IMG/VR virus record: IMGVR_UViG_3300027969_000039
Location: 186,001 to 250,000 of that record
Direction: 5' to 3' (one strand)
DNA: 64,000 nucleotides
The notes beneath the pieces were generated by a model. It saw only the letters and a list, made by a program, of their open reading frames with translations, was not told the origin of the DNA and made no database searches. Position 1 is the first letter of the stretch. The number at the start of each line of letters is the position of its first letter. Shown here piece after piece: positions 1,798 through 44,210 of the stretch. The translations under genes and the position numbers were made by a program.

Positions 1798-1801
1798 ATA
1801 T

Positions 1802-1808: not shown

Positions 1809-1810
1809 CT

Positions 1811-10800: not shown

Positions 10801-13800
10801 TATAGATTTCTTCATTTAACGCACGAACTATGTAACGTGTTTCAGTTGACGGGTATGAATCGAAAGGAGTAGTATCAAAGAAGTTATCTCCAAACCCTAA
10901 TCTAGCACTAGGATAATCCCATAGTACAGATGAAAATTCTATTGTGCCGTTATCTAACCCTATTCTTGTCCACAATCCGTCTGCGCCATATATGTATGTT
11001 TCTCCGTTGCCAGAACCATTAGATATTACTTTTACAATTGTTCCTGCTGCTACTTCTAATGTGGACAAATCTGCATATAGAGGAACTTGTATTGATGCTT
11101 TAGTAGCATCATTGTACCCAGTTGCCCACCAATTTATATAATACCAATATTGTGTAGTGTCAAATGCTTCCCCGGTTTCTGTTAAGAAAACTGGGTTCCT
11201 AATTTCTGCGATTGGGAATTGAGCAAGTACCGTATTAGCATACTGTAGGTAATTCTTTAACGCACCAAATCTATCATAAAAGAAACCTTGTCTTGGTCTA
11301 GATAGTACGCCGGTTTGTACTGCTTTTGGCAACAATGGGTCCGGTACTACACCACCTGCATTATCAACACCACACATACTATCTAGCATTCTATTGTACA
11401 GTCCAATTGGTTGATCAATACCAACTGCACCACGATACTGATATCCAGCACCAGATCCCGGTGTTCCTGATAAAAAGTCATCAGCGTAATTAGCACGAAT
11501 TAAACTATATTGATTATGTGGAACATCGTTGTTGGATCCTGTTGCATAACCAATATTTAGAACCGTGTCATTTGCGTTAATATATGCAAATGCATTGTAT
11601 AATGCATAAACACTTGGTAACAATGGTGCAAAATAAGTTATACCAGTTGCTTGTGGTTGTATTATATAATATTCTAATACGGTATCAGATAATGTTTTAC
11701 CTAATTTTTCAAATATTATATTTGTATTTCTTGCCCAGAAATAATAGATAGGGGCAATCAACCCTTCAGCATTTATTACGCCGCCTACTGAATAATTATC
11801 TATGTTGTACGGGACTCCTGGGCCTGTATACTGTGACGGAGGTACATTGCTGCTAATCCATGAATATACAGCTACATCACTACCTGGGAATACACGACCC
11901 CACCATTGGCTATTGTATGAAACATCATTTTGATGATAGTTCATAAATCTAGTATTTGAAGTATCGAACCACAACTGCCCCACTTTATCACTTGACCATA
12001 CGATACCACCTTGTGTATCTGCTGGGCTGTTATATCCCGCAGGATCATTATTTGATGTGATATCGATATTCTCTGCTACTGCTCCTAGTAATTTTCCTTG
12101 CAATGGGTCAATATAATCTAGATTTTCTAATGTGTTATTAGTTAATGCACTAAACAATTGAATATTGAATATTCCATTAACGTCAACGACCGGGGCAGAA
12201 CTTCTGTATACAGCCCAATCTGGCGTACTACTTTGACTTACATAAGTAATAACTTGCCCATTGTATCCTGTGTTAGGAACAAAATTAGGAGTACCAATTG
12301 TTACATGATTACTATTAAAATCTAATGCTGTTCCATAATATGGTTGAGTGCCATAGTCTAAGTCCTTAGAATTAGTACTTTGTGCATAAACAAAGTTGCC
12401 TGGATTATCTATGTTTTCATTGTATGCTGACAAATAATCAAACATATAAACAGCGCCTGCATTAGTGAATACATCTATCCACTGAGTAGCATTATTGTCA
12501 AAGACTGTATCATTGTCTAATTCATCGTCAGTAAAATCAAATGTAGTTGAAGTATAACGTGCACCAACCGGAGCGCTTGCGATAAACGAACCACTGTAGG
12601 ATTTATCAAATTTTACTACGGTTCCAAATTGAGTTCTACCGTCTAAATGTGGACACATTATCTTTTGTGTTTGTGTATATATTGTAATACCAATTTCACT
12701 TAACGTAGCGTTATCAACCACTGACAATGATAATTTGTTTCCAGCTGTTCCAATTGTAGTATCAACTAATGATATTACTAATTTACCATTAAGTGTAGTT
12801 GCATACACATTTGGTATTGAAACAATGTTTATACTTGTAGCAGCAGAAGTAGCATCACCAATTGGCAATATTACATTGAATCCATTAATTAAAATATTTC
12901 TAGGTGCTGTGATAGTGCAAGTAGTATCACCAACAATCATTCCATATTTTTCACCAGCATTAGTATATCTATGTACTGCACCTTCGTAATTTTTATCACT
13001 CAGTTCGTACGGGGCACCAATCAATATTTCATTTGCATATCTATTAACATCTACACTAGTACCAAATTCTACACCAACTCTTGGTGTTTCTTCGTTAGTT
13101 AGTGTTTGTGTTAACACAAAATTGCTACCACTGATATTAATTAAGTCACCTGCATTTATTGTAGGTGATTGTGAACTATAAACATACAATGAAGAACCAG
13201 TTACTGCATATGTATTATCATCTAGTGATGTTCCATTAACTGACACAAACAAAGGAGTAGTTTGTACAGTAACTGTCATACTACCAGACGCGGTTATTAA
13301 GTCAATAGGTGCAGTTGCATCACGAGTCAACGCAATTCTAAATGTAGTACTTGTTGGTTTATCATAAACATAATAAACCGTATCCGCAGCTATTGCACCT
13401 GCTGATATCAATGTACCAGAAAATACTACAGGATCGTTTACACTAAACCCTGCGCTACTACTGACAGTAATTCTATCAGTTGTGCTATCTGTAGCAGTTG
13501 CAGTTTGTGATACCGTAGTTGGAGTCCAGGCTAAAGGAATTACTATTGGTATAAACGGTTGATTGCTAGTTCTTGAAATTGTATTCTGAACAGTTCTAGA
13601 GAACACATAAGTATAACCATAGTTAGCAGTGTTTACATCATAATCTTTATACGGAGTACCTACTACAACGGTATCACCGTAGTAATCAGTTGCAATAGAG
13701 TACCCAAACGTATCCCCACTGACTAATCCAGCTACAGTAATTCTAGTAGAATATTCGTATAAATCTGTTAATGCAGATTTGCGATAAACATAAACATAAT

Positions 13801-16800
13801 TATTGTCTATGTCAGAAATATATAACCAAATTTGATCACCTGACAATGCAGTTGAAGTTCCCCATGTAGTAACACCAACTGGTGCTGCAATAGTTTGATA
13901 TAAATCTAATGTGTTAGATAAAGTGGTGTTTATTAACTGATAAATGTAAACATTAGGCGAACCAGTTGGTTCTGAAATCACAAACAAATCGTCAATATAT
14001 GTTATGTTAGACCCAAATGAAGCACCATGGGTCAAAGTTTGAATTGAACTGTAAGAGTTTGAATCAGAATAATATCTATATCTATTAACTGTTCCAGCAC
14101 CACTGTCACCAATTAAATATCCTAATGTGTCTGTATATGCAACTGCACTACCAAAATTATTGCTACTTAATTCAGTAATCTCATTGGTATATTGATAGTT
14201 TAAACTCTTGCGATAAACTGCCCAGCTACCATCATTGTTAGTGTCTACCCATACTTTTAATTTATTAAATTCATTGTCTAATAAAGGTAAGTTTATGATT
14301 TCTGGTGCAGTAGCTACGCGCTGATTCTGCATTCTGAAACCAACGCCTTGTCCAGTTAAACTAGTTATGTTAGGGTCAAGTGAGAGATTAATGATTACTC
14401 TATTTGTATCTACCACTGCTGCAACGATATAATAATTATCAATTGCAACATCAAAATTAACAATTGCAAAAACTTGATATACTGTTAAGTTATGTGCTTG
14501 ATTAAATCTTATTGTTACTGTGCCATTCAAATTATTTTGTGCTGCAATCACCGAACCTAGACTAGCTGGAGTATATACTTTCCAATCTGATAGATAGTTA
14601 GCTAACCAAGCATAATCACGTACATAGAACTCAGTTATTGGTATTGTTGTTCCAACTGAGTTTTGTGCTGTTGACAATCCAGAGTAATAGTAACTAGCCA
14701 TTTTAACATCATCGTAATTAACATATCCTGCCGTAGGATACAACTCAGATGGGTATGTATTAGCTATAGTAGGTAATATATCAACGTCAGTTATTGGACG
14801 ACCATAATTGAATACGCTATATATAGGCACTTGCTGTTGTACGCCATTTATAGCAATACCATTAGTTAATCCTACAATACTAGGGTTACCAGTTAATTCC
14901 GTTTGGTTCAATTTGAATTGAATGAAGTTATTATTTAATACTCCTCCAAACTCACCTGACTTGATAGCCCAATTTTCATATAACTCATAATCAATGCCAC
15001 CTTGCGCTAGTGTTGCACCTTTAAATGCACTTGCTGCATTTAATGTACCTTTATCTTTTATCATATTTTTATAAACATTGACTTGAGTGATATCAGTCAA
15101 ATCAGCCAATGCCATATAATCTCTTGGGCGATATCCAATTAAACTAAAACTTAATAGGTCAGCATCATTTTCTAAATTAGCCCTATTCACATCATAGTAC
15201 AATGTACTTTCGTATGAACGAGTTTGACTATTAGGTAATAATCCTTTTTGTATTTGATCGTAATCTGTTTGCAACCATTCTTGCTCATCAAACGTTTCTT
15301 TTGCTTGAACAATAGTTATAGCAGTCCAATATCTATTTTTATATTTTACAATTGAACCCTGAGTGTATTTTACTTCTCTGGTCCACTCTTGAATGTTATC
15401 TTGATTAAGGATGAATCCATATGCATCTACTGTTCCGTTCCATTCAGCAGTTTTTGTACCACGCACAGTGATACGATTTTGACGCAAACCTGTAACTAAA
15501 TTGTAGATCACATCATTGAATAATGTTAAGTTATTGAATACGATGCCATGTTCAATATTGCTGATGTTAAATTGACCATATGATATAGTATCACCGTCGT
15601 TTAATGCTGTTACTGTAAATGCAGTACCGTCACGAACAACAGACATGTCTGTGCCTGATATAGGATATAGATTCTGATTTAATATAAAATTAAATTGTTG
15701 CAATGTTAATGGTTGAACAATAGAACTTTCTTTGTTTATTGAAAGTATTTTTGCTGCAGGATTTATAGAAGTTATACTACCAACTGCCCATCCAGTCTGT
15801 GCCCAATATAAGAATTCAGCAATCATCTGATTCCAATTGATTGGAATACCATTTTCTATCTCATCAAATACAACACCTTTTTGTATTAGATATTCGCCGT
15901 AGCTAACTAAAAATTGTGATACTTGTTGAACCGTGTAAAATTCAGTTCCATATGGAACTGTTACTGTTCTATCATAGAAGTCAGTTGCTACTCTTACAGT
16001 AAGGTTGTCAACAGTGATAGTTTCAACTGCTGGATTTGGTTTAGGTGCTAATACTTTGAAGTATGCATTAGTCTGACTATTTCCAAATACTTTATATCCA
16101 CGATCAGTAACTTGTACTATTACACCACTATAAACTATTCTATCAAACGGTTGATTTTCGTATAATAATACTTGATAGCTTTCATCAGGAATTAATAATG
16201 AACTATTATTACTGTTGGCAGAACTCTTTTCAACATAGAACTTTAACAAATTCTTATCGCTAAAACCAGCTAAACGATATACTAAACGAACATCTAAATT
16301 ATTTAACAAGGTAGTTATGTTTGTAGTTGCATCAACTCCAACTTGTTTTTCATAATCAACAATCCAGTTGATATAACTGGTTGCAGGAGTACCTGAACCA
16401 TATATTGGTATATCACTTATAATCAAATGATTTATGTTGTTTACTAAGAATTGATTGAATTCAGCATTGTATTTGTAATTGTCAACATCTACTCCTAAAT
16501 TAAAGAAGTCTGCTGGCTTAGTTACTGCTAGTATACGCATCAAATCAAATGGCCAAGTACTACTTCTACGGTAGCTAAACTCTGCGGGCCCTACATCACC
16601 TACGACCCAATCACGTTGAAATGCATTTTCATCATATGCCCCTACAATAGAAATTAGTGGTGATACTAAATTTCCATTGCTATCAACTGGGATAATTTTT
16701 AATAAATCAGGACGAGCATAATTAGGTTTTATATAAGAATTACCGTTATTCCAAACTAATCCTTCAGCTAAATCTTCCCAAAGAACTAAGTTATCACTAG

Positions 16801-19800
16801 TGTATGGTGCTGCACCATATCTAGTTTCCCACCATGTTGGTTTATTAGCAATGCCTAACATTTCCCATGGTGTTTGATCTGGGGTTGAAGTATCGTAATA
16901 GTACAGATATAAACCTCTAAAATATCCTTGCTCAATTGGCTGGCGATTTATCTTGTTGCCACTGTCAACATAGTTATAACTAAATTGATTATTCTTATTG
17001 TAAAACTGTGTCTTGTAATCTATTCTATTTTGCCCTACCCAATTTAAGAAAGATTCACTATATATTTGTAAAAATTCATCGTAAGTATAACCTGTTTCTC
17101 TAAAGAATCCAGGTATTATTACACCTTCATATGAACCAGCCGGGACTGTTTCACTTAATTTTAAATTATTATAAACACGGGTTTCATATTCAAGTAACAC
17201 TTGGTCTCTGAAGTCAACTAATTTACCTGTACCAGGATTATAATTTCCATATAATTTAGTAAAAGAACCGTCATGTCCTACAATGAAATATGTTTCTGGA
17301 TTATATGCTGTATCTAATACTACCGCAGGTACCGTTGCAGGATATAATCCTAATTTAGTAGGAGTATTTGGTGCATAGCTACCATATGTTTGATTATATT
17401 CGTTTACTGTAATTTTGTCATTAGGTTGTAAATCAGTAGTGACAGTTAGTGTAGGACTATCTATACTAATAGTATAATCAATTCCTTTAATTAATTGAGT
17501 TTGTTTTTCGTTACGAGTAAGATATACCAAAACTCCATTATAATTTGCTGTAGTAAAATTATATATTTGACTCAATGGGTATATACTAGTATCTAATGAA
17601 TTAGCAAAAGAATATGTATTAGTAACATATGGTGCTTTTGCTGGAATCATGTCACTCCAGAAAAACGGTTGTTCATTATTACGTGCCGCATTCATTTGAA
17701 TGATTGCGTTATCTAGCATTTGAGCAGGGGTTAACATTGTGCTATAGCTAGAATTATTAATTGTATCAATTAATAGATTTTTAAAAGTAATATACTGTCT
17801 GCTATTGTATAATAGTGCATCAATTACATCATGTGTTTGGTTTCGTAAAAATACCCCAGGCAATACAAGCGAAGCACTATTCTGTATTATTCTATTACCC
17901 CATGGTACTAAATTACCTAAATCACGATAATTATTTGCCCCAAATACTTCACCGGTTGTATTTGGATTGTTAAAGAAGATGCTTTGATATTGTCCACGAA
18001 TGTCGCCAATGTTAGCAGTAGTTATATCTTCATTGAATGGATTGTTATTCAAATTATCAGGGATTTGATAATATGCTGTATTACTTACTTGATCACTTAA
18101 TACTAAAATTTGTATTACTGTTTCTACTGCATCAAAATTAAGAGGAATATTAACTGTGGTAGTAGTATTGGTAGTTGTTACCGTGTAATCAGTATTAGGT
18201 ATATAACGATTATTAATGTACACTTGTACAGTAGGCCAATTAGTTTTTGTAGAACTCATCGGAGAAACATCACATGTAAATGTGTACACCGGAGCAACTA
18301 TCGTCCAATCAAATTCAAATATTTGATATTGAACACTAGGAGAGACTGCGGTTTGCCAACCTAATGATCTCACATAGTTAATACGGTCAGTGTAATTATA
18401 TACATATCCGGTGTTAACTTTTTGTGTTATTGCCGTAGTGCCATTGACGTAATTAAAAGTATCTAAATTTAAAGAAACATCAAAACTAACATCCCCAATA
18501 TTGTCTATTGAACTATAACGTATTGGGAAACCTAAATATATATCATCAGTTCCTGAACCTATTCCATATCTAAACAATGTTGAACCAGTGAATGACGTAC
18601 TAGTATATACTAGAGGGTCACTAAAACTTATACCGTTTTCATCAAATATATCAAACTTTGGTGGTTGATTTACAGTTGTCTTTTGTTGTCCTGCATACCA
18701 ATTGTTCCCGTCAAAATAAAAATCTTTACCTATGTTATTGTATCCGCGATATACAGCAGTTTGCTCATCGGGTAATACTAATCCATCTTCAGCTTCAAAT
18801 AAAGTAATTACTGGAACACCATATGGTGTAGTAGTTGAAAATCTTGCTATATAGATTTTATTTCTTATGTTTGCTGTTGTGTCAACTGAAAATACTACTC
18901 TAGCACCGTCAAAAAGTGCATAGTTATCTAATGGAGTATCTGCTGTAACTACAGACGCAATTGAGGTCCCATCTATTATAGATTGACTATACCAGGTAAC
19001 CGTTATAATTGTGTTTGAGCCCACGACTGAAACATCACTAACTAAAGTAATAGAAGGCAATACACCAATCGTATCTGTTATATATTGATTGACTTCAAAT
19101 AACCCAGACACCCCGGTTGTAGGAACAGTTATAGTGGTAGAATACGGGTATATAGAAGTAGTCATTGTACCACTAGCGGTGGTAAGAATAACAGATTCTC
19201 CGCCTTTTAAAGTAGATACAGTTATTAAATTACTAGCAATATCAGTAATATAATAAGTAGTTCCGGATATTATTCCACCAAAAACAGTGCCGCCAAAACT
19301 TATAGTATCATTCACATGCAACGTAGCGGTACTACTCAATAAAATTTGATTGGTTACTGCATACGTTGTAGTTGCTGTTATACTAGTAATCGGACCAGAG
19401 ACAGGTGCTATTATTGCATCGTATGTTGTCCAACCTGCTACATCTGGATAGTATCCACTCTGTCCTGCTACATAGGTAAATGCGTCAGTTGTTCTAGTAT
19501 CAAAAAAATCTACCGGACTTTTTCCTACTGAACCAGAATCAAATAATTTTAAGTTAGGATAAAATTCAATTATTGGTCTTTTTGCTTTATTAGAATCAGT
19601 AGTATATTCTGTTATTAGTGCAGGAGTGTTGTTGTATGCAGCAGTAGCATTAATAACATCTATGTGAAACCAACGATTACTTCTTGACCATGCATTTCTA
19701 TTAACTGAATTTCTAGCAATGGTTATGTAATCTGGATTTATAGGAACATATAAACTAGAATCATAGTTTCCAACATCCCATGCGGTTGTGTCCCACGGTG

Positions 19801-21190
19801 TGTATTCACCAGAGGCAAATAACCCAGGTGATACTAAATTAGTTACTGTTAGTAACTCTATGTTAGTTCCAACACCTTCTACATAGTATTCTGTATTGTT
19901 ATACGTGTTAGGGAAAATATTTCCTTGGAATATAACTTTTAACCCGTTAGTGAACACTACTCCATTTGGAGAAGTATATTGTTTTTTACCTAATATGTCT
20001 GTTATAACATTAATTTGACTTGTGCTATTATTCTCAACTAGTTTAATAATACCTACTCTAGTAGAAATAGTATCATCTTGATAATACAACGTATCTAATA
20101 TTGGACTATTGTATGGTTCTAATTGTATGTAACCTAAATTATTTCTATAGAAAAGTCTATTAATCCATTGAGTGCCATATAATGCTATTATTTGCTGTTC
20201 GTTTGGAATAGCATCACCTAGTGTCAATGATATGACTGGATTATTGGTTGCGCCAGTTAGTGTGATTTGATAGAAATTAGTTTCTGTGCCTAAATCATTT
20301 TCGCCGGTATTATAAAACATTAGCGTCAATCCATCTAATGATGTTATTCCGTCAATGCCACCTATATCATTTACATATGCTCCGTTAACTTGACTATACG
20401 GAAGTGTAGAAACAACACCTACTGTATTGTCTCCAGAAAAAATATAATCAGCTAGTGCATTTTTTTGCGGAACATTAAATGTAATCGTTCCATCTGATAT
20501 CCCGTTATTAGTAACTCCGTATACATCACGGGTTTGAAGATTAGTTTGTGTTGGACTATAGCCAGTGACACCCGGTGCGCCTTGTATCCAAAAATTAGTA
20601 TTTTGATTAACAACAAATGTATAAGTTCCGCCACGGATTAAGGTTAGTGTTGGGTTAGCTTCTGCATCAGCTAATGATTCAGATGTTATTACATAATCAG
20701 CGGGTTCTGATGCAACTACATAAGTAGCTTGAGTATATACTGCGCTAGGTTGTACTGTGACACGTTCGGGTCCGGTTGGCAGCCAGTAATATTGATTATA
20801 GTTTATTATTTTATCTAAATCAGTAAAAGAATCCCATGAATAAAACTGACTACTAAACAATCTACTATTGTCATATGTTATTCCGCCACGTAATGTTAGT
20901 GCATCTATTATACCCGGATAACTAATAAAATCTTTTGCAGTAGTATCATTTTCTTTTAAGAAAACAACACCTGGATCTAATTGATAATCAGTTCTAGTTT
21001 TAGTTGGTTCAGTAACATAATAGTCATTGGCATTAACACCATATCCAAATTTACTACCAATGTAACCCTCAATTCTTTCAATATTGGGCTGTGCAACTAG
21101 CTGGTCCAATGTTGCTGCTAAAAATTGAGCATTGGTGGTAGTTTTGAATATTTCTGGTAGAAAATCTAGTGTTCTAATTCTTGTTGCCAT
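1811..21190 (-). CDS. Giant baseplate wedge/adhesin-like structural protein (gp7-like position), 6459 aa
   Basis: Directly downstream of gp6-like gene. Contains YLNEVKPYHV (wedge-type motif), FG-GAP-like blades (FGYSIA...VVVGTP, FGTSVDV...LIGAP), BNR-like SxDGxxW repeats and many beta-rich repeats. Confidence 0.75.
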   Translation of the reverse strand: MATRIRTLDFLPEIFKTTTNAQFLAATLDQLVAQPNIERIEGYIGSKFGYGVNANDYYVTEPTKTRTDYQLDPGVVFLKENDTTAKDFISYPGIIDALTLRGGITYDNSRLFSSQFYSWDSFTDLDKIINYNQYYWLPTGPERVTVQPSAVYTQATYVVASEPADYVITSESLADAEANPTLTLIRGGTYTFVVNQNTNFWIQGAPGVTGYSPTQTNLQTRDVYGVTNNGISDGTITFNVPQKNALADYIFSGDNTVGVVSTLPYSQVNGAYVNDIGGIDGITSLDGLTLMFYNTGENDLGTETNFYQITLTGATNNPVISLTLGDAIPNEQQIIALYGTQWINRLFYRNNLGYIQLEPYNSPILDTLYYQDDTISTRVGIIKLVENNSTSQINVITDILGKKQYTSPNGVVFTNGLKVIFQGNIFPNTYNNTEYYVEGVGTNIELLTVTNLVSPGLFASGEYTPWDTTAWDVGNYDSSLYVPINPDYITIARNSVNRNAWSRSNRWFHIDVINATAAYNNTPALITEYTTDSNKAKRPIIEFYPNLKLFDSGSVGKSPVDFFDTRTTDAFTYVAGQSGYYPDVAGWTTYDAIIAPVSGPITSITATTTYAVTNQILLSSTATLHVNDTISFGGTVFGGIISGTTYYITDIASNLITVSTLKGGESVILTTASGTMTTSIYPYSTTITVPTTGVSGLFEVNQYITDTIGVLPSITLVSDVSVVGSNTIITVTWYSQSIIDGTSIASVVTADTPLDNYALFDGARVVFSVDTTANIRNKIYIARFSTTTPYGVPVITLFEAEDGLVLPDEQTAVYRGYNNIGKDFYFDGNNWYAGQQKTTVNQPPKFDIFDENGISFSDPLVYTSTSFTGSTLFRYGIGSGTDDIYLGFPIRYSSIDNIGDVSFDVSLNLDTFNYVNGTTAITQKVNTGYVYNYTDRINYVRSLGWQTAVSPSVQYQIFEFDWTIVAPVYTFTCDVSPMSSTKTNWPTVQVYINNRYIPNTDYTVTTTNTTTTVNIPLNFDAVETVIQILVLSDQVSNTAYYQIPDNLNNNPFNEDITTANIGDIRGQYQSIFFNNPNTTGEVFGANNYRDLGNLVPWGNRIIQNSASLVLPGVFLRNQTHDVIDALLYNSRQYITFKNLLIDTINNSSYSTMLTPAQMLDNAIIQMNAARNNEQPFFWSDMIPAKAPYVTNTYSFANSLDTSIYPLSQIYNFTTANYNGVLVYLTRNEKQTQLIKGIDYTISIDSPTLTVTTDLQPNDKITVNEYNQTYGSYAPNTPTKLGLYPATVPAVVLDTAYNPETYFIVGHDGSFTKLYGNYNPGTGKLVDFRDQVLLEYETRVYNNLKLSETVPAGSYEGVIIPGFFRETGYTYDEFLQIYSESFLNWVGQNRIDYKTQFYNKNNQFSYNYVDSGNKINRQPIEQGYFRGLYLYYYDTSTPDQTPWEMLGIANKPTWWETRYGAAPYTSDNLVLWEDLAEGLVWNNGNSYIKPNYARPDLLKIIPVDSNGNLVSPLISIVGAYDENAFQRDWVVGDVGPAEFSYRRSSTWPFDLMRILAVTKPADFFNLGVDVDNYKYNAEFNQFLVNNINHLIISDIPIYGSGTPATSYINWIVDYEKQVGVDATTNITTLLNNLDVRLVYRLAGFSDKNLLKFYVEKSSANSNNSSLLIPDESYQVLLYENQPFDRIVYSGVIVQVTDRGYKVFGNSQTNAYFKVLAPKPNPAVETITVDNLTVRVATDFYDRTVTVPYGTEFYTVQQVSQFLVSYGEYLIQKGVVFDEIENGIPINWNQMIAEFLYWAQTGWAVGSITSINPAAKILSINKESSIVQPLTLQQFNFILNQNLYPISGTDMSVVRDGTAFTVTALNDGDTISYGQFNISNIEHGIVFNNLTLFNDVIYNLVTGLRQNRITVRGTKTAEWNGTVDAYGFILNQDNIQEWTREVKYTQGSIVKYKNRYWTAITIVQAKETFDEQEWLQTDYDQIQKGLLPNSQTRSYESTLYYDVNRANLENDADLLSFSLIGYRPRDYMALADLTDITQVNVYKNMIKDKGTLNAASAFKGATLAQGGIDYELYENWAIKSGEFGGVLNNNFIQFKLNQTELTGNPSIVGLTNGIAINGVQQQVPIYSVFNYGRPITDVDILPTIANTYPSELYPTAGYVNYDDVKMASYYYSGLSTAQNSVGTTIPITEFYVRDYAWLANYLSDWKVYTPASLGSVIAAQNNLNGTVTIRFNQAHNLTVYQVFAIVNFDVAIDNYYIVAAVVDTNRVIINLSLDPNITSLTGQGVGFRMQNQRVATAPEIINLPLLDNEFNKLKVWVDTNNDGSWAVYRKSLNYQYTNEITELSSNNFGSAVAYTDTLGYLIGDSGAGTVNRYRYYSDSNSYSSIQTLTHGASFGSNITYIDDLFVISEPTGSPNVYIYQLINTTLSNTLDLYQTIAAPVGVTTWGTSTALSGDQIWLYISDIDNNYVYVYRKSALTDLYEYSTRITVAGLVSGDTFGYSIATDYYGDTVVVGTPYKDYDVNTANYGYTYVFSRTVQNTISRTSNQPFIPIVIPLAWTPTTVSQTATATDSTTDRITVSSSAGFSVNDPVVFSGTLISAGAIAADTVYYVYDKPTSTTFRIALTRDATAPIDLITASGSMTVTVQTTPLFVSVNGTSLDDNTYAVTGSSLYVYSSQSPTINAGDLINISGSNFVLTQTLTNEETPRVGVEFGTSVDVNRYANEILIGAPYELSDKNYEGAVHRYTNAGEKYGMIVGDTTCTITAPRNILINGFNVILPIGDATSAATSINIVSIPNVYATTLNGKLVISLVDTTIGTAGNKLSLSVVDNATLSEIGITIYTQTQKIMCPHLDGRTQFGTVVKFDKSYSGSFIASAPVGARYTSTTFDFTDDELDNDTVFDNNATQWIDVFTNAGAVYMFDYLSAYNENIDNPGNFVYAQSTNSKDLDYGTQPYYGTALDFNSNHVTIGTPNFVPNTGYNGQVITYVSQSSTPDWAVYRSSAPVVDVNGIFNIQLFSALTNNTLENLDYIDPLQGKLLGAVAENIDITSNNDPAGYNSPADTQGGIVWSSDKVGQLWFDTSNTRFMNYHQNDVSYNSQWWGRVFPGSDVAVYSWISSNVPPSQYTGPGVPYNIDNYSVGGVINAEGLIAPIYYFWARNTNIIFEKLGKTLSDTVLEYYIIQPQATGITYFAPLLPSVYALYNAFAYINANDTVLNIGYATGSNNDVPHNQYSLIRANYADDFLSGTPGSGAGYQYRGAVGIDQPIGLYNRMLDSMCGVDNAGGVVPDPLLPKAVQTGVLSRPRQGFFYDRFGALKNYLQYANTVLAQFPIAEIRNPVFLTETGEAFDTTQYWYYINWWATGYNDATKASIQVPLYADLSTLEVAAGTIVKVISNGSGNGETYIYGADGLWTRIGLDNGTIEFSSVLWDYPSARLGFGDNFFDTTPFDSYPSTETRYIVRALNEEIYTNELLIFRNKSLILLFEYIQSETIESQNYLTWLNKTSFLDVSHTIRELVPIEVFRSDNQLFLEGYLNEVKPYHVVIKEFLFKYTRTDVFEGDITDFDLPAQWNANIGEFVSPQLVYNGGDSVYQYPPTSSIWDSNAYTEWYNNYGLSIGVFVDETQSYIGQKDFQISVLDSYLSLNTSYCYVGNVNGFPINGTITIGEEQIGYSGKDLLNNQLTGLTRGMNGTTITQHLPGEYIFMDLPPVIILNTGRNYINPPQITAYVDTTIYPEPRVPAQLQAIMSLGTVIGVEVINPGSGYAVLPNIVIDPAYILSIDSSQVNVLDNTININTAYDLQTGDVIVYSVGSNSTTIEGLIEGQQYYVNLLEITPSPVFALYTMYQEAIQDHNRVVFGNSGTGTQNFSIGAIGYCILNSMPIRENVITLRFDRTTYTSQVIDWAPGGLYGSFYAGDLHNSNQISSSSIKLYEEYPSIDSILASAAGATFEILDAENQQTLTWSSRTRNTVQTYGSSYSTVAYQNAIRINPSSGGAAVAGDIGSTIGFYIGMPVKFVGSTIGTSLVDSTTYYVKSLVQLPNANSTSSSNLDIGYNYVITVLGDTDWNSVADTVGVTYAVGDVVISKFVASGTGTAALLEDTGFTISDTVGIDGVPGAVFVQNTATIVTAGLILYVGQLVNQAILTINYTGLRNAVATTRTTNNVTVLLTPTGQNGTIGFYTTMPLFFVTNSAGNNETFGNIVENKIYYVLTVIDLETFTMSATNELPVMFEVTATSSSNNSITCETTQGLTINEPIIFTGTTFGNIVAGATYYVREKFTNGTSFSVSTSVNGEAVTLTTATGSCMLNSQDLAVQLTDGSGSMTLNVNLPVSPGQITGQQFTLYQTSQQYSGLSGTISNLLTRSISATLATVNRICISTFSGGLTNIYNGLKFNVGNDIGGLTTTGGPYTVTGTGTTALTVTDTTSSTNWLTAPLSLNPNLTDVLYVGMPIYFTGTSIGGVSLNLVYYVFSIDSSPPADTGRFTISEDQLFGSVYNVTTDSGLMTLSGEGYITVGTSLLNSTQAATITDSSTPTAATITVANGSAFPNGTAVVLSSTGTLPAPFNVYTTYYVANKSGNTFNLVYVVGGTTIKTTTTGSGTHYVLETQVQLVQEVVTDPNFDVSYILGGYRIVITSAGQGYAVDNTVTIAGSSIGGISPANDLTLTALTIDSIGGITSAVCVGTPAGVVEQYYLEVISSNQVAVYSNPELTAPVSGQNFSYSGITSTTATETVAASDRITVTSSASFNVNEPVVFTETVFGGISLGLTYYIYDKPTSTTVRISTLPALLSSLVQLTDATGSMTMASSGDYALLPEPFYFTPSIVKFNNRVYQCVVSNNDNEFIIGKWELLSPDNRNLNALDRIIGYYQPTVNMPGKDLAQLVNGITYPNSTYLGNAFAPADEYTLNTILTDQTFYPVGLNGQSIAVKDSTYFIASNSSDYSSINTSTLSNWTINKLSNTPINVTSIIYTGGTSGKFILSSNNTATPILVSDDGINWDATALYNSTDPILLASSGVTLNCVTNSSIASATVAVGSSIITSVTQPNDNVPYTWDETFTFTNGFTNEFNGVAYVSTAGFTGFIAVGLGQAASSGTVAPTNYGIIYSSADGFTWTQVPFTATSFSLNSIAGNSQTIVIVGDNGVIYTSFNGTTWFPQTSPVATNLNNVTWSTYLSTFIAVGDNGVILTAPTNGITWTQQTSNVTENLQSSVSDNVSGLLIVIGYNNTMLRSTNSTTWTLDNYVNTPAPIYNVQGDSFTEGYGPEELVAGVVSDNITMIVNTRPGTNWDQTIYQNIGYNVVSLEIAPTSGTQTQYSFINAVNVPIQISVFMIDYTTELSTTMILGSDYTIDWINKIVILSNPITYVSSTIHDNLRIDVYEVGNGDQLVKSNTEADPIKYNEVTGFSEIDVNANYSAGIYQGSGLIKPTTSPVTAYALSTNGINNTIQCDSVDDFVLNGAITFSGAVFGNIVEDQTYYVKSIGYTTNRITISDTYNSSTGTAGTIFFLSTASGLMDAIIQTGLGAAWSPPAVYHNGNLLVLGYTATVLRTKSSTNTITTITTSGLIVNTPIVFSETIFGGIVHHQTYYIKSIYDSNEFTISETVSGPVFQLTNATGSAEFISNDYSIGISTNGITAAIIFAANYDNTVDYLVYSFLGQTVPTQYGYTLPQTQLFIGDGSTDSFALDYFVGEDNPTNAIVEINGLRQSLSTYTISADNDSILFDTPPNVNDNISVTSYNLTERQYFSTSELTSSYTVAPIINVNNVITPTTAIIGITSTQAGSATVVNAGSFTTTKQYIIVSLGTTTNWNTVAGTTGVTYAVGSLFTAATVGSGNGTAKLANSLISTADPSLNLTVGQSIQFKTANINAGSFISSTQYCITSLGNTDWQSIASSYNWLSGYPVVGGIFTANAIGSGSGTAVLTTINGISTIGTNYTVSAITTNPNAAYAFTIQDELSASPTVTTGAVATVLTGYAGGFSAVTVTTSITPNFILNSLVRIDGVIGSVQLNNNLYYVRPMSTTQYELYTEPYNPALYAVNYPVTTISTYVSGGYIWIDGVFTIHDTVATATDDNGNRITVASTDILISNTPVYFTKYPAPSETNILGNILAKHKYYIFAVRPEISAGNFIIGNEYEITSLGTTNWNAIGYVGTPVTLGTFVATGTGTGTGTANGLQEFTISETPFPYQEEVQLVDASGSIYVTQYEQVNVDRLWVTINGYRVPSSSLRLNSYNNLSILSNIQTSDEVIITSMMPTASPNEETYLLNVSQQGDASVYRANHQTRTWLVSPLEILQDIIYLNDVTRVTDSIIQTVTAPALVDGTFNIGLISNKNVICHIQVYNNTTGLFLGGANFAIVIEDTAPILQIQPIGVSVGDSLTITTVEGRLLYINGEQIGFNECDLVANTVSQLTRGANGTGMQAYIPVYSEAFGLIPNNRMSDVLYSATWNPIPGIYNTEDGDPLQIAYTQGANFLRTDIT

Positions 21191-37953: not shown

Positions 37954-38604
37954 ATGTTTATCAAAAACGAATCTTATATTAGATATTATGAAATTATAAC
38001 TCAAGCAAATAATATATGCCCGCGCACTATAAAAAAGTCTGAAGCTATGGAAATCAGAGGATACATTGAAGACCACCATATCATTCCTAAATGTTTGGGA
38101 GGACAAGATATTATTTCTAATAAAGTATGGTTGACTGCCGAAGAACATTTTATGTGTCATAAACTCCTAACTGAAATGACAGTAGATAATGCTAACGGTA
38201 AAATGTGGAGTGCATTATGGCGTATGATGAATAAACAAAGTAAAAATCAAGGACGAGATTATATTATTGATGCCAAAGAGTATGCAACAGCGAGAGAACA
38301 AAATGCAAAAAATCATAGCATCAGAATGAAAGGTGAACTAAATCCATTTTATAAAAAAACACACACTGATTCTACTAAAGAAGCAATGTCTGTTAGTAAG
38401 AAGGGCAAAACTTATGAAGAAATATTTGGAAAAGATAAAGCCGACGAGATGAGAGATCGCAGAAGAAGTGAAAGTTTAGGTAAACTAAAGGGCCCACAAC
38501 TAAAATCTACATGTCCACATTGTGGTGTTGACGGTGGGTTTGGTATAATGAAACGATGGCACTTTGAGAATTGTAAATTTTTAGGTAACGTTAAAACATC
38601 ATAA
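37954..38604 (+). mobile_element. Free-standing HNH homing endonuclease with NUMOD3-like DNA-binding motif and C-terminal Cys/His motif
   Basis: EDHHIIPKCLGG...NKVWLTAEEHFMCHKLL (HNH); GELNPFYKKTHTDSTKEAMS (NUMOD3-like); CPHC...RWHFENCK. Confidence 0.85.
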
Positions 38605-39653: not shown

Positions 39654-39890
39654 TTAGAAGAATGGCATCTGTGTTTTCTTAGTAGTTTCTAAATTATCTT
39701 CTACTATCCTGCCAATGGCTTCTCTTTCATTCGGGGACATGTTAAGTATATCTTCATATGTTACCCCTCCCCGCATGTACCAAGAAAACTTTAACGAAGA
39801 TTCTTTTATACTAAAGGCTTCTTTTTCCAGATCATCTAATAATTTTTGTATCTGCTCGTTGTTCAGAGAAAGAAGCCTTAATCGAAAAAA
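39654..39890 (-). CDS. -1 frame extension of the tail/baseplate assembly chaperone (gp51/gpGT-like); missing from ORF track
   Basis: Open from the slippery run to TAA at 39654: FFRLRLLSLNNEQIQKLLDDLEKEAFSIKESSLKFSWYMRGGVTYEDILNMSPNEREAIGRIVEDNLETTKKTQMPFF*. An in-frame TGA lies immediately upstream and the first ATG is mid-domain. Confidence 0.7.
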   Translation of the reverse strand, partial: FFRLRLLSLNNEQIQKLLDDLEKEAFSIKESSLKFSWYMRGGVTYEDILNMSPNEREAIGRIVEDNLETTKKTQMPFF

Positions 39891-40699
39891 TCAGTTACAT
39901 TTAATGTTAATGTTTGTGTGTATTCATGTGAGCAATTTACACATTGTATTTTTTGTGGTTTAATATTTGAATCGGATCTTAGATTTACCATAGTAGTACG
40001 AATCTTTTCAAATGTACTTCTATCACATGAAGATAAGAATTCAATAATAAATTTAGGATCAGTTACTGTTTCTCCAGGAACACTTATAGATTCTATAGTC
40101 ATAGATATCAAGTTCATATTAAGTGTAGATAGTTTTTTCATTATCTCGCCGGATTTAGTATTTCGTAAATTATCATCTTGCATTTCTTGCAAAACTGAAA
40201 TTTCTCTTTGTGCTTCAAACTGTGCTAAGTTAAGTTTGTTACTATCATTATATGTAATTGGTTTAAATTTGATTATTAAATCACCAATTGGAAAAGTATT
40301 ACCATAATCAACATTTTTAATGCTTTGTAGTAAACCACCTAGATTAATAGCGTAGGATCCTTCATTTTCACATTCTGGACAATTTGATTTTATTTCTAAT
40401 TCATTTCCATTAGTTGCTGAACGAATAGCAATCAATATAGCGTCTATGTCTATATTTGGCATTTTCCATGGATCTTTGATTGCAGGAATACAGCTTTTTA
40501 TAATCTCAACGACCGCGCTACCGTTAAATAATGCGTCTGGAGTTTTACTAGTAATTTCATCAATAGCAGTCATGGGGTAAACAGGAAGTTCACCACTTTC
40601 AGGCATGTCGATGGATCCCTCAGGGTAATATTGCCCTTTACTAGGTAGTGTAAGATACAATGCAGGTCTGCGGAAATACTGTTTTAAGGGGTTGTTCAT
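39878..40699 (-). CDS. gp26: Baseplate hub assembly/tail chaperone, T4 gp26/gp51 family
   Basis: LYLTLPSKG...VYPMTAIDE...DIDAILIAIRSAT...CPEC...CVNC...DFF end; GGAG Shine-Dalgarno; divergent from the tape measure gene. Confidence 0.75.
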   Translation of the reverse strand: MNNPLKQYFRRPALYLTLPSKGQYYPEGSIDMPESGELPVYPMTAIDEITSKTPDALFNGSAVVEIIKSCIPAIKDPWKMPNIDIDAILIAIRSATNGNELEIKSNCPECENEGSYAINLGGLLQSIKNVDYGNTFPIGDLIIKFKPITYNDSNKLNLAQFEAQREISVLQEMQDDNLRNTKSGEIMKKLSTLNMNLISMTIESISVPGETVTDPKFIIEFLSSCDRSTFEKIRTTMVNLRSDSNIKPQKIQCVNCSHEYTQTLTLNVTDFFD

Positions 40700-40784: not shown

Positions 40785-43700
40785 ATGATGAACGAACAAG
40801 AATTATTTGAGAGATTTGACAGAATCGCTGAAGCCTTGGAAAGAATGGCTACTGGTGTTGATCATTCCACTGAAACCATTGATTCTGAAACTACTGCTAG
40901 ACGAGAATTAACTCAAGAAGAAAAAGATGCTCAAGACGAATTAAACAAGAGAAGAAAGCTGGAAGAATCATATTGGAATCAACAGAGAAAAGAAAAACAA
41001 GAGATTGATGCTAGAGTCAGAAGGAATTTTGATGAGTTAGGCGCTAGTATAAAATATGTCCAAGAAGGCAATGCAATATTAGGAAAAATTGAAAGACAAA
41101 GAGTAACTGAAGATAACCTGCGTAAAAAAGCAGAAGAACAACTAAACAAAGCACTAGAAGAAAACGATAGTACTTATAAAAAATTAAGCGAGTCTGGTAA
41201 AGAAAGATATAAAGCTGAGTTAAGAAACGAAGCAGCAATGACCAAAGCATATGCTGCAATTGGTAGAACTATTGACCAGTATGGAAAAGTAACAAAAGAA
41301 ACTGATCATTTAACTTTAGCTCAACGTGCATATCTTGATATACTTAAGCAGATGGACGAAGTACAAAGACAAATGGCTGGAAATGTTTTAAAATTAGGAG
41401 CAGACTTAGGTAAATTAGCAATCAAAGGCACCTTTGATTTGTTTGTTGCAGGCATCAAAGGTGCATATGAAGGAACAATAGCATATCAAAATGCTATACT
41501 TGATGGTGCAGGGGCTAATGCCGCAGCCGCTGCACAAGTATCAGCCGAAATGAATGCACTAGCGGGTGCATTAGAATCTACTGGTTCTAGTATGGTTAGT
41601 TTAGGTGCAGAAGCTGCAAAGACTGCGGTACAGATGATTATATTAGGTGGACCAATAGGAGCATTAGTTGGCGTAATAATGTTACTAGTAGGTGCTGTAG
41701 TAGCATATGAAGGCTATGAGAAAGAAGCACAAGCTAAAAAAATGAAACGTGATGCTGAACTTCAAGCAAAGCAAGCAGCAATATATGATCAATTATATAA
41801 AGACTTTACTCAACTTTCATCAGCATCACTAACTAGTGCAGGTGGAATGACTACACTGTGGAAACAACTTGGACAAGTATCAATGTCTGTAAAAGACTTT
41901 GGTAAATTTAACAAAATTTTAGTAGAAGGCAGCGCAAGTTTAGCTACATTTGCTAGTTCTGCGGTAGAAGGTGTACAAAAATTCACAGATGTAGCTGGAT
42001 CAGTTATTAAATCTGGACTAGGAGATGTATTCCGTCAGATGGGTCTGACCAATGAGGAAATGGCAGCACATACATTAAAGTACATGGAACAACAGCGTTC
42101 ACTTGGAACGCTACAAAATAAATCTGCTACTGATTTAAAAATAGGTACTGCTAACTATATCCGAGAACTAGATAGAGTTGCAGCATTGACCGGGCAATCT
42201 AGAAAAGATCAAGAAAAAGGTAGAGATGCGATAAGAGCAATGGCACAAGTTAGTGCGGCTAAAAATATTGCAATGCAACGCGGGGATACTAAACAAGCTG
42301 GAAAATTAGGAGTTGTTGAAGAACTTGCTGGCGGTTTGAAAGCAACTATGCCGGAATTTGCAGCAGCTTTGGCAAAAAGAGTATCAGGTGCTGCTCTTGA
42401 TTCAGGTCAAGTAGCAATGATGAAAAACCAAGGGGAATTGTTAAGGTATATAGATAGTGGAGGAAAAGACCAAGTAAAAATGCAAATGCTGGTTGCTCAA
42501 GGGTTAGAAAAACAAGATAAAGGAAATGCATTTTTAGTTAGAACAGTAGGAGAAGTTGCTGGATATACGCAAGACAACTTTGCTGACAGACAAAAATTTG
42601 AACAGCAAATAGCAGGTTTAAGAAAAGCAGAAGCTGATGCGAAAAAAGCTGGAAAACCATTCGATGCTGCTGCGTTCTTAGACAAACAAAGAGAAGTTAC
42701 GGATCCATTTACAAAGGCTCAAGCAGACGCTGCTCAAAAAGCTAAAGAAACACAAATAGCATTTGAAAAAAATGTAATGGGATTATCAACGGAATTTCCA
42801 AACATTATGAAAGAAATGATTAAAAAATTACCAGAATCTTTATCAGGTCCAATAATGAAATTCTTTGAATATGTTGAACAGTTTGGCAGATATGTTTTGA
42901 AGTTTATTGGTGATCCATCAGACACTCTTAAAGAAACATTAACTGGAAAAGACAAATCTCAAAGAGATGCCGAGAATTTGATTGATAAACAAAAAGAATT
43001 AAAGTCAGTTGAAGAAAGAATAAAGAGTCTCAAAGAGTCAACTGAAAATCCAGAAAAAGCTAAAAAGCAAGCAGATGAGAAATTTAAGTTAGCTGAACAA
43101 GAACTTAAATTAAAAGAACAAGCTGTGACGGATTTGAATATTCAAATGAATAAAGAAAAAGATCCAAAGAAAAGAGAGTTACTAGCTATTCAAGGATCTG
43201 CAAAATATTTAGAAGAAAAAGAAGCAAAAGAAAAATACAGACTTGCAAAAAAATCAGTCGAAGATAACGAAACAGGATTTTTTAGTAAAAGTATAGAAAC
43301 AAAGAAGAAAGAATTAGCAGACTTAGAAAAAAGAAAATTAGGGTTAGCTAATGAAACAACAAAATTAGAACAACAAGTTAAATCAAATCCGGCATCAACA
43401 ACTGCTGCAGGGTTTGCTAAAACGTATGGTTCAAGCCCAGCTTATAGTATGGCAATGGCTGGCGGTAAAGGCGGAGGTGGTAGTGCAGGAGCTATGGGTG
43501 CAGGTGATCCTTCAGGAGGTGGCAGCGGACCAAAACCAGAATTAAAAAGCGTCACTAGTAAAAGTGGTCCATCAGCACAAGTCAATAAAAATGTTGCAGA
43601 CAATTTTCAAAATTTGATTAATCATCTTGACATGGCAGGTTATAAAATTAATGATATGGGCGGGTACAATAATCGAAAGATAGCTGGCACCGATGTTATG

Positions 43701-44210
43701 AGCGCACACGCCCAAGGTGCTGCGCTTGATATTAATGAAAAAACTAATCCAATGGGAAGTAAATTAATAACCGATATGCCTGAAAATATTGGAACAATAG
43801 CAGGTAATCTTGGATTAGGATGGGGTGGTAATTGGCAAAGTAAAAAAGATGCAATGCATTTTAGTGCTACTAGAAGTGAAGGTGGTACTCTTATGGCTAA
43901 AACCGGTGGAGTGTTTAATGGTCCTCCGGGAGGATATCCAGTAGAACTACATGGTAGAGAAGCGGTAGTTCCACTTCCAAACCCAGGAGACAAAATATCA
44001 ATTGACAAAGGGCAACAAGATGGTGGAGCAACAAAAAGTGCATTATCTTCTGTAGTAGCAGACAACAATACTACATCTTCAAAAGACAACAGTTCTGCTA
44101 TATTAATGGATTTATACTCAATGATGGAATCAAAATTTGATGACCTCATTGACAAAGTAAGCACAACCAATACTTACACTAACAAATTATTAAAGTATTC
44201 TCAGGTCTAA
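40785..44210 (+). CDS. Tape measure-like protein with C-terminal M15-family peptidoglycan peptidase domain
   Basis: Long helical Ala/Lys/Glu-rich body; hydrophobic segment IILGGPIGALVGVIMLLVGAVVAY; GGYNNR...SAHAQGAALDIN...WGGNW...DAMHF (M15 Zn ligands H, D, H); GG...GP...ELHGREAVVPL, a common tape-measure C-terminal motif. Confidence 0.8.
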   Translation: MMNEQELFERFDRIAEALERMATGVDHSTETIDSETTARRELTQEEKDAQDELNKRRKLEESYWNQQRKEKQEIDARVRRNFDELGASIKYVQEGNAILGKIERQRVTEDNLRKKAEEQLNKALEENDSTYKKLSESGKERYKAELRNEAAMTKAYAAIGRTIDQYGKVTKETDHLTLAQRAYLDILKQMDEVQRQMAGNVLKLGADLGKLAIKGTFDLFVAGIKGAYEGTIAYQNAILDGAGANAAAAAQVSAEMNALAGALESTGSSMVSLGAEAAKTAVQMIILGGPIGALVGVIMLLVGAVVAYEGYEKEAQAKKMKRDAELQAKQAAIYDQLYKDFTQLSSASLTSAGGMTTLWKQLGQVSMSVKDFGKFNKILVEGSASLATFASSAVEGVQKFTDVAGSVIKSGLGDVFRQMGLTNEEMAAHTLKYMEQQRSLGTLQNKSATDLKIGTANYIRELDRVAALTGQSRKDQEKGRDAIRAMAQVSAAKNIAMQRGDTKQAGKLGVVEELAGGLKATMPEFAAALAKRVSGAALDSGQVAMMKNQGELLRYIDSGGKDQVKMQMLVAQGLEKQDKGNAFLVRTVGEVAGYTQDNFADRQKFEQQIAGLRKAEADAKKAGKPFDAAAFLDKQREVTDPFTKAQADAAQKAKETQIAFEKNVMGLSTEFPNIMKEMIKKLPESLSGPIMKFFEYVEQFGRYVLKFIGDPSDTLKETLTGKDKSQRDAENLIDKQKELKSVEERIKSLKESTENPEKAKKQADEKFKLAEQELKLKEQAVTDLNIQMNKEKDPKKRELLAIQGSAKYLEEKEAKEKYRLAKKSVEDNETGFFSKSIETKKKELADLEKRKLGLANETTKLEQQVKSNPASTTAAGFAKTYGSSPAYSMAMAGGKGGGGSAGAMGAGDPSGGGSGPKPELKSVTSKSGPSAQVNKNVADNFQNLINHLDMAGYKINDMGGYNNRKIAGTDVMSAHAQGAALDINEKTNPMGSKLITDMPENIGTIAGNLGLGWGGNWQSKKDAMHFSATRSEGGTLMAKTGGVFNGPPGGYPVELHGREAVVPLPNPGDKISIDKGQQDGGATKSALSSVVADNNTTSSKDNSSAILMDLYSMMESKFDDLIDKVSTTNTYTNKLLKYSQV

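Follow-up and report, generated by a model that had tools for sequence, protein, structure and literature searches.

How does a freshwater jumbo phage obtain both a gp26-like and a gp51-like baseplate-hub assembly protein, which phage T4 encodes as two separate genes, when only one gene of this family can be found? To address this question, we analyzed a 64,000-nucleotide stretch of IMG/VR record IMGVR_UViG_3300027969_000039 (positions 186,001 to 250,000, hereafter the window), for which an initial annotation had proposed a programmed -1 frameshift in a T4-type gp26 gene. Our data suggest that this single gene very probably uses a conserved -1 ribosomal slip to make a short gp26-like and a long gp51-like protein, and the public phage records that we checked do not annotate this.

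The 0-frame gene (minus strand, 39878-40699, stop included) encodes 273 aa and ends with ACT GAT TTT TTC GAT TAA. It belongs to Pfam family PF12322 (T4_baseplate, T4 gp26/gp51), with a score of 75.5 bits against a curated cut-off of 24.5 bits (E 6.4e-21, profile positions 35-218 of 219), and it also matched phrog_150 (baseplate hub). T4 gp26 and gp51 both match the same Pfam model. In the family alignment, two zinc-ribbon-like CxxC pairs (C107, C110, C253 and C256) and the terminal FF (F271 and F272) are invariant, also in T4 gp26. The predicted structure is confident (pLDDT 88.5), and its best BFVD matches are T4-like (gp26-like) baseplate hub assembly proteins (TM 0.92). A slippery heptamer, T_TTT_TTC, lies at 39890-39884 (minus strand) in X_XXY_YYZ phase, and is the proposed site of a tandem -1 slip of two tRNA-Phe. 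The -1 frame is closed by TGA at 39893-39891 directly before the T-run, with no open codons upstream in the window and in many relatives, so that the -1 ORF can only be entered at the slip site. It then stays open for 76 codons to the TAA at 39656-39654, and its first ATG/GTG/TTG is codon 37 (39776). The 0-frame TAA (39878-39880), one codon after the heptamer, lies inside the spacer and overlaps -1-frame codons 2-3 (xTA AGG); this stop is found 1 codon after the heptamer in most relatives and 3-11 codons after it in the rest. The predicted products are 273 aa and 272+76 = 348 aa, with the junction ..NVTDFF|RLRLL.. Thus, the observation in the initial annotation was correct in every statement about the sequence.

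A nucleotide search of the junction against cultured phages found nothing, and homologs were therefore collected by protein-level searches. The conservation of the heptamer and of -1 frame coding, which had been named beforehand as a test, was examined in 74 distinct homologous junctions (IMG/VR jumbo phages, Rak2-like phages, PA5oct, Atu_ph07 and Phosso) with 28-100% protein identity. This conservation is far more than chance. All 74 carry the same in-phase heptamer, including three synonymous positions, among them the wobble T of the preceding codon and the TTT/TTC choice. Information is 2.0 bits at all 7 positions, compared with 0.1-0.6 bits at other wobble sites. Given the codon usage of these genes, NNT-TTT-TTC is expected in about 14% of independent lineages even if the amino acids are fixed. 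It should be kept in mind that the FF dipeptide is conserved as protein in the whole family, T4 included, and part of the T-run conservation is therefore a protein constraint; however, T4 gp26, which has no extension, encodes the same FF as TTC TTT. Two more distant phages carry T_TTT_TTT instead.

The length of the -1 ORF is also conserved (76 codons in the window, 70-77 in six cultured relatives and 71-82 in a further set of four). In the 68 IMG/VR junctions analyzed, the -1 frame has no stop in 76 codons, whereas the other two frames average about 7 stops. Wobble-type periodicity switches from frame 0 to frame -1 at the heptamer, already in codons 1-18. In contrast, there is no conserved start: the first ATG/GTG/TTG lies anywhere from codon 2 to codon 37, and PA5oct has none at all, its record leaving a 224-nt unannotated gap. 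The residues R-x-R-L-L directly after the slip site are nevertheless conserved. The extension (minus strand, 39654-39884, 76 codons plus TAA) is a conserved, predicted helical domain (R-x-R-L-L ... W-Y-M-R-G-G ... E-R ... T-K-K ... P-F-F; pLDDT 90) with a mean column identity of 66%, compared with 61% for the body.

Downstream of the heptamer, we predicted a stem-loop (minus strand, 39810-39882) that might stimulate the slip. Its G+C-rich core helix pairs 39869-39877 with 39816-39824, starts 7 nt after the heptamer and is extended outwards by A+U pairs. In most lineages a stem-loop starts 5-8 nt after the heptamer, and its 3' arm sits at different distances and carries compensating arm sequences; PA5oct has an unrelated arm sequence with the same geometry. 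The structure is, however, weak in the window (-17 kcal/mol, z -2.2), stronger in six relatives (z -2.8 to -6.8) and absent in the Rak2-like Serratia phage BF (z +0.5). RNAalifold on all junctions in one register returned no consensus because of the variable position of the 3' arm, and per-sequence folds and a duplex test were used instead. The duplex of each arm with its own downstream sequence had -12.5 kcal/mol against -7.4 kcal/mol for control arms (p 5e-29), and pairing was 70.5% against 29-52% when slid, although covariation counted in a fixed register was modest. No matching element was found in Rfam, and no upstream Shine-Dalgarno-like stimulator was seen.

Several lines of evidence relate the two predicted products to gp26 and gp51. 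In other lineages, natural in-frame proteins of 319-351 aa consist of a PF12322 body, a junction ..F-R-x-K-L-I.. and the same C-terminal domain, and an HMM built from these proteins hit both window ORFs (8.6e-72 and 1.8e-28). In those lineages, a short PF12322 paralog that ends just after FF lies immediately upstream. For example, in the large phages designated here L102 and L105/L106, the long paralog (325-342 aa) is the body plus the C-terminal domain (E 1e-17 to 1e-21 to the extension profile), whereas the short paralog (297-305 aa) stops 3-6 residues after the terminal FF/F-N-F motif (FFQKK in L102, NFNTEK in L105) and has lost the cysteine pairs. The window body resembles both (E 6e-33 and 1e-27) more than they resemble each other (5e-15). 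These phages have two genes and no frameshift. By contrast, tblastn found only one PF12322 locus per frameshift-type genome at E<=1, and HMM searches found only one in the window.

In T4, gp26 and gp51 are a baseplate hub assembly chaperone and catalyst. T4 gp26 is short and ends with FFELL, 3 residues after FF, like the 0-frame product, while gp51 is PF12322 (residues 1-201) that continues past the same point (..VFKLLVNPDEI..) into a C-terminal tail. In hhalign comparisons, the extension profile aligned with gp51 residues 220-249 (P 9e-5, probability 59%), and the long forms aligned collinearly with gp51 over 212 columns (E 4.8e-5, probability 68%). These are moderate profile scores for a remote similarity, the T4 tail is about 48 aa against 76 aa here, and the C-terminal domain entry of newer Pfam, PF28602, is not on record for the in-frame long forms. 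Widening the gp51 family with a profile search recovered only Tevenvirinae-type gp51, so the link could not be strengthened in this way. As in T4, the gene is divergent from a hub/tail gene block, but T4 uses two diverged paralogous genes without a slippery site, and gene 25 follows gene 26. The extension is unrelated to T4 gp25, nor is it a repeat of the body, and searches of Pfam, PHROGs and NCBIfam gave no family for it.

The interpretation offered in the initial annotation was only partly supported. The programmed -1 frameshift at T_TTT_TTC in a gp26-type gene, giving a short and a C-terminally extended product, was supported, and so was, more strongly than the sequence alone could indicate, the idea that this lineage links the frameshift strategy with the separate genes 26 and 51 of T4. 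However, the description of the products as a gpG/gpGT-like chaperone pair holds as an analogy of logic only. As in lambda gpG/gpGT and P2 gpE/gpE+E' (reviewed in PMC5009743), a -1 slip on an X_XXY_YYZ heptamer near the 3' end of a tail-morphogenesis gene would give an abundant short and a rarer C-terminally extended product that share the N-terminal part, and the logic would be to fix a ratio of two forms of an assembly factor. In the lambda gpG/gpT type, the shared part binds the tape measure and the extension binds the tube protein. Neither PA5oct nor CBB virion proteomics lists the gp26-like protein, as expected for a chaperone. On the other hand, neither the body nor the extension had a Pfam, PHROG or NCBIfam hit to gpG/gpE or gpT families, and profile searches and Foldseek against the PDB gave no meaningful match for either. 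The gene is also not located between the tube and tape-measure genes, but lies beside recombination and nuclease genes and is divergently transcribed from a 1141-aa gene (plus strand, 40785-44210) that is followed by the portal gene. The initial annotation had regarded this neighbor as the tape measure. It encodes a long helical protein with a hydrophobic segment and a C-terminal Peptidase_M15_4 domain, and the same position holds a virion structural protein in PA5oct, BF, GAP32 and CBB. However, BLASTP against T4 gp29 (E 0.17) and the PA5oct neighbor, a weak match, was uninformative, and the protein is at present only a possible tape measure or hub protein. The E. coli dnaX gamma/tau -1 frameshift cassette is likewise of the bacterial type, with a homopolymeric heptamer, a short spacer and a stem-loop, which here is only predicted, and with a stop codon close to the slip site, but there the shifted frame terminates at once and the shifted product is the shorter one, whereas here the unshifted frame terminates and the shift would extend the protein.

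We therefore consider it highly likely that the gene at 39654-40699 (minus strand) is the single PF12322 baseplate-hub assembly gene of a freshwater jumbo myovirus and is decoded in two ways. In this view, most ribosomes read TTT TTC GAT and stop at TAA, whereas a fraction pause over the predicted stem-loop that begins about 6 nt 3' of the heptamer, the P- and A-site tRNA-Phe re-pair one base back on U_UUU_UUC, and translation continues in the -1 frame, giving a protein whose extra C-terminal domain would correspond to the tail of T4 gp51. The frameshift would thus fix the ratio of a short and a long form of one assembly factor, an end that other phages would reach with two paralogous genes, either T4 genes 26 and 51 or tandem paralogs in another large-phage lineage. 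The computational data establish the gene family, the signal and its conservation, coding in the -1 frame from the heptamer onward, the lack of a conserved start and the existence of in-frame fusions. That ribosomes actually slip and produce the trans-frame protein, how often they do so, and that both products act in hub or tail-tube initiation as assembly chaperones, is inferred.

Other explanations appear unlikely, although they could not all be excluded. The downstream ORF might be a separate small gene, with ribosomes that terminate at the gp26-like stop re-initiating nearby by translational coupling, possibly on a non-canonical start, to make a free protein of about 75 aa and no fusion. 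Phosso, Atu_ph07 and 3-4 metagenomic relatives indeed have an ATG overlapping the stop (ATGA), GenBank annotates a separate 76-aa CDS in Phosso, and Rak2-like phages have a conserved ATG at codon 13 that is annotated as a start. In addition, one very distant relative (LR756508) has an overlapping extension-like ORF in the +1 frame with its own ATG, and the domain may therefore work as a separate polypeptide in some phages. However, most lineages, including the window and PA5oct, have no ATG/GTG/TTG near the stop (codon 2 is TTA, ATA, GTA or CTA), residues encoded upstream of every candidate start are conserved with coding periodicity, and relatives and, as judged from moderate profile scores, T4 gp51 carry the domain covalently fused to the PF12322 body with a collinear junction. 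This model also does not explain why the heptamer is invariant at synonymous sites.

Alternatively, the same fusion could be made by transcriptional slippage, with RNA polymerase adding one extra U in the T6 run. RsoM2USA has a T9 run and Xoo-sp13 a T7 run, and such lengths favor polymerase slippage. This possibility is about as unlikely as re-initiation, because six T's is short for efficient slippage by bacterial or phage RNA polymerase (PMC5009743), selection keeps TTC rather than lengthening the run to TTT in 74 of 74 junctions, and the stem-loop predicted in most lineages at ribosomal spacing is not needed for it. No insertion variant was seen in the one RNA-labeled run examined, although its contigs would hide rare variants and the run is probably DNA. 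Finally, homopolymer runs are error-prone and in-frame versions of the gene exist in other lineages, but a sequencing or assembly error, or a recently broken gene, is effectively refuted. The junction is identical in four separate IMG/VR assemblies, contigs of four independent public runs, including a strain about 7% divergent, cross the T-run without an indel, the same arrangement occurs in cultured, finished genomes of at least six genera, and both frames are under purifying selection.

A broader reading, which remains tentative, is that the PF12322 short/long pair is the T4-type and jumbo-myovirus counterpart of the G/GT tail assembly chaperones. The shared body would hold the tape measure or hub proteins, and the helical C-terminal domain of the rare long form would recruit the next component. 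On this reading, the missing conserved tail-gene frameshift of T4-like phages exists in their jumbo relatives and was replaced in T4 by gene duplication; the same function would have been solved three ways (recoding, tandem paralogs and divergent paralogs), and the frameshift form could be ancestral.

Programmed -1 frameshifting in tail assembly genes is considered near-universal in long-tailed phages, with T4-type phages as the classic exception. The literature that we searched, which does not cover most subscription journals and thus cannot exclude a prior description, contained no report of a frameshift in gp26/gp51-type genes. In none of the dozen cultured-phage records inspected is the gene annotated as recoded; instead, the extension is called as a truncated or separate hypothetical ORF, or is left blank. 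Our findings place a deeply conserved frameshift signal in a different protein family, the gp26/gp51 hub-assembly factors, across a large group of jumbo phages (Rak2-like, PA5oct, Atu_ph07, Phosso, SCTP-2 and many freshwater metagenomic phages), of which PA5oct, GAP32 and Atu_ph07 offer tractable cultured systems for the function of gp51-like proteins. They also give a rationale for why T4 has two paralogs, gp26 and gp51, whose roles have stayed obscure for decades, and predict that a fixed short-to-long ratio is what matters.

The minus-strand ORF at 39878-40699 encodes 273 aa and ends with ACT GAT TTT TTC GAT TAA, within which T_TTT_TTC (39890-39884) is in X_XXY_YYZ phase. In the -1 frame, a TGA (39893-39891) lies directly before the T-run, and the frame is then open for 76 codons to the TAA at 39656-39654, with its first ATG, GTG or TTG at codon 37. 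The predicted products are thus 273 aa and 272+76 = 348 aa, the junction of the latter passing from NVTDFF to RLRLL. All sequence statements made in the initial annotation of this site were found to be correct. The Met of its "MRGG" is an internal residue of a W-Y-M-R-G-G motif and is Leu or Thr in some relatives.

The 273-aa protein matched Pfam PF12322 (T4_baseplate) at 75.5 bits (cut-off 24.5 bits), as well as PHROG 150 (baseplate hub). Its AlphaFold model is confident (pLDDT 88.5) and has no counterpart in the PDB, but it matches predicted structures of T4-like "baseplate hub assembly" proteins with TM 0.92. The surroundings are those of a T4-related jumbo phage. On one side lie a gp46-like nuclease subunit, an HNH/NUMOD3 endonuclease and a PDDEXK resolvase, whereas on the other side, divergently, lie a 1141-aa protein with a C-terminal M15 peptidase and then portal, prohead protease and major head protein. 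The endonuclease, a 216-aa ORF at 37954-38604 (+) with weak HNH and NUMOD3 matches, is located between the gp46-like gene and the PDDEXK/RusA-like resolvase gene and is likely a homing endonuclease insertion. Elsewhere in the window, a single uninterrupted minus-strand ORF of 6459 aa (1811-21190), unusually large for a phage protein, is followed by further large ORFs of 1124, 1344 and 923 aa. The window is part of a 303-kb IMG/VR contig from fresh water, and the closest cultured relatives (28-38% identity) are Phosso, Atu_ph07, PA5oct and the Rak2/GAP32/BF/CBB group.

To examine whether the site is conserved, we collected the junction from 87 IMG/VR loci and from cultured phages, which gave 74 distinct sequences. 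Every one has T_TTT_TTC in phase, and the stop lies one codon later in most of them and 3-11 codons later in the rest. All seven bases are invariant, including the wobble T of the preceding codon (GAT, AGT, AAT, CAT, ACT), TTT rather than TTC, and TTC rather than TTT, whereas ordinary wobble positions carry 0.1-0.6 bits. From the codon usage of the same genes, this combination is expected in about 14% of independent lineages even with the amino acids fixed. Four more distant jumbo phages showed the same arrangement: Vibrio 2.275.O and Salicola SCTP-2 have T_TTT_TTC, and Xanthomonas phage Xoo-sp13 (at about 1495 of its extracted locus) and Ralstonia phage RsoM2USA (at about 1430-1450) have T_TTT_TTT, in the latter within a run of nine T's (GTT TTT TTT TCC). 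In these two phages the variant site is followed by a 79-82-codon -1 extension. In contrast, T4 gp26 encodes the conserved FF as TTC TTT, stops three codons later and is followed by gene 25.

The -1 ORF is exactly 76 codons in the metagenomic clade, 70-77 codons in six cultured relatives whose junctions were compared first, and 71-82 codons in the four more distant cultured phages. It never contains a stop, whereas the other two frames average about 7 stops, and it is slightly better conserved than the body (66% against 61% mean column identity). The position of least conservation moves from codon position 3 of frame 0 to codon position 3 of frame -1 exactly at the heptamer, and this already holds for extension codons 1-18. 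The first possible start codon in the -1 frame lies anywhere from codon 2 to codon 37, and PA5oct has none at all. Annotation of the extension in the GenBank/RefSeq records of Phosso, Atu_ph07, PA5oct, BF, GAP32, XbC2, Vibrio 2.275.O, SCTP-2, Xoo-sp13 and CBB is inconsistent: it appears as a separate 58-76-aa hypothetical protein from the first ATG, as a 40-aa fragment (Atu_ph07), or not at all (PA5oct, whose RefSeq record leaves a 224-nt gap). In RsoM2USA it is also not annotated, and no record inspected marks ribosomal slippage. In Rak2-like phages (extracted loci L004 3540-3570, L005 3545-3575 and L006 3540-3575), a G+C-rich, terminator-like hairpin followed by a T-run sits immediately after the stop of the -1 ORF, suggesting that the extension is the last coding sequence of the transcription unit.

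In most lineages, a predicted helix starts 5-8 nt after the heptamer. Its 5' arm is usually (A/G)GGCUUCU, and its 3' arm lies at +35 to +45 in most relatives, at +60 to +74 in the window, at about +64 to +81 in Atu_ph07 and Phosso, and at +60 to +68 or +77 to +91 in other clades. Changed 5' arms come with matching 3' arms (GGCUUUU with AAGAGCC, GGCUAC with GUAGCC, CGCCUCUU with AAGAGGCG, and GCCUCCU with AGGAGGC), and PA5oct has an unrelated arm sequence with the same spacing. The arm pairs with its own downstream sequence at a mean of -12.5 kcal/mol, compared with -7.4 for control arms (p 5e-29) and -9.7 for downstream sequences of other loci (p 2e-17). Single-sequence z-scores were -2.2 in the window, -6.7 in Atu_ph07, -4.1 in Phosso, -2.8 in PA5oct and -3.8 to -6.8 in three metagenomic relatives, but +0.5 (no structure) in Serratia phage BF. 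A fixed-register count gave 70.5% paired cells, against 29-52% when slid, with modest covariation. It is probable that a stem-loop follows the heptamer, although it is not uniformly present.

The extension had no Pfam, PHROG, NCBIfam or PDB sequence match. It is predicted to form a compact helical domain (pLDDT 90), for which Foldseek found no match in the PDB. However, T4 gp51 and all its Tevenvirinae homologs carry PF12322 plus a second, C-terminal family, PF28602. The PF12322 match covers residues 1-201 of 249 in T4 gp51 and 1-206 of 208 in gp26, so gp26 and gp51 are paralogs that differ by a C-terminal tail. The gp51 sequence passes the point where gp26 ends (DVFKLLVNPDEI) in the same way as the predicted trans-frame product (DFF followed by RLRLLSLNNEQI). 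The extension profile aligned with gp51-family residues 220-249, sharing the pattern Y..I.NM.P.ER..I..LIE (hhalign P 9e-5, probability 59%), and the link to gp51 rests on such moderate profile scores plus collinearity. It should be noted that the T4 record annotates a second, internally initiated product of gene 26 (26', the C-terminal 95 aa; 3803-4090 of the T4 locus L007). Thus, T4 also makes two products from gene 26, but they share the C-terminus rather than the N-terminus.

An exhaustive profile search of 1.84 billion representatives returned 428 hits, most of which are mis-called fragments of the -1 ORF. Twenty are natural proteins of 319-351 aa in which the domain is the in-frame C-terminus of a PF12322 body, with the junction F-R-x-K-L-I. 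These long forms aligned collinearly with the gp51 family over 212 columns (E 4.8e-5), and an HMM built from them hit both window ORFs, which lie in different frames (8.6e-72 and 1.8e-28), a classic frameshift signature. In their genomes, a second PF12322 gene of 297-305 aa lies immediately upstream and ends shortly after the terminal motif (DFFQKK in L102 and NFNTEK in L105, two loci with tandem paralogs). The window body resembles both paralogs (E 6e-33 and 1e-27) more than they resemble each other (5e-15). On the other hand, frameshift-type genomes showed a single PF12322 locus even at E<=1, and the window has only one. The 196-kb contig of L105 also encodes, nearby (1091-3864 and 8885-11471), a ClpB-like AAA+ chaperone (737 aa), a DnaJ-domain protein, an ART-PolyVal ADP-ribosyltransferase-like protein and a MoxR/DUF2201 pair.

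We considered whether the arrangement might arise in other ways. An assembly error is excluded: four IMG/VR assemblies from different samples have the identical junction, and contigs from four independent public runs, one of them belonging to a strain with 23 substitutions in 310 nt, cross 39884-39890 without an indel. Coupled re-initiation is possible in the few lineages with ATGA, and the Rak2-like annotation suggests it too, but it cannot explain the start-less majority, the coding conservation upstream of all starts, or the synonymous invariance of the heptamer. Transcriptional slippage is unlikely on six T's and would not select for the terminal C or for a stem-loop, although the T9 run of RsoM2USA could also support it. 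One outlier remains unexplained. In LR756508.1, a 484-kb uncultured phage (locus L111, 1380-1700), the gp26-like gene ends NFLFPTE without a slippery heptamer, and an extension-like ORF (YYSNGGYSWYNVYHHMP) lies in the +1 frame with its own ATG 8 codons before the stop, overlapping the end of the body gene. This exception to the -1 arrangement could be a separate overlapping gene or another kind of recoding.

Three genomic solutions appear to give a short and a long PF12322 protein: divergent paralogs (T4 genes 26 and 51), tandem paralogs (L102, L105), and one gene with a -1 frameshift (this window and many jumbo phages). We found no prior report of such a frameshift in the open-access text to which our literature search was limited. 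The in-phase heptamer, its invariance and the coding conservation of the -1 frame are shown by sequence comparison, whereas slippage by ribosomes, its efficiency and the synthesis of the long product are inferred from sequence alone. The interpretation offered in the initial annotation, a gpG/gpGT-like chaperone pair divergent from the tape measure gene and linking the lambda and T4 strategies, is partly supported. The proposed mechanism matches the logic of lambda G/GT (PMC5009743), but there is no detectable homology to G or T and the gene position differs. Membership of that family is therefore not supported, and the divergent neighbor is, on present evidence, only a possible tape measure. 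The T4 review lists gp26 and gp51 as hub assembly chaperones and describes gp51 as essential, absent from the particle and of unknown function (PMC3004832). The gp26-like protein is not flagged as a virion protein in PA5oct and is not in the CBB virion proteome table, whereas its divergent neighbor is abundant there. The likeliest mechanism is therefore a programmed -1 ribosomal frameshift that would set the ratio of a gp26-like and a gp51-like assembly factor in these phages.
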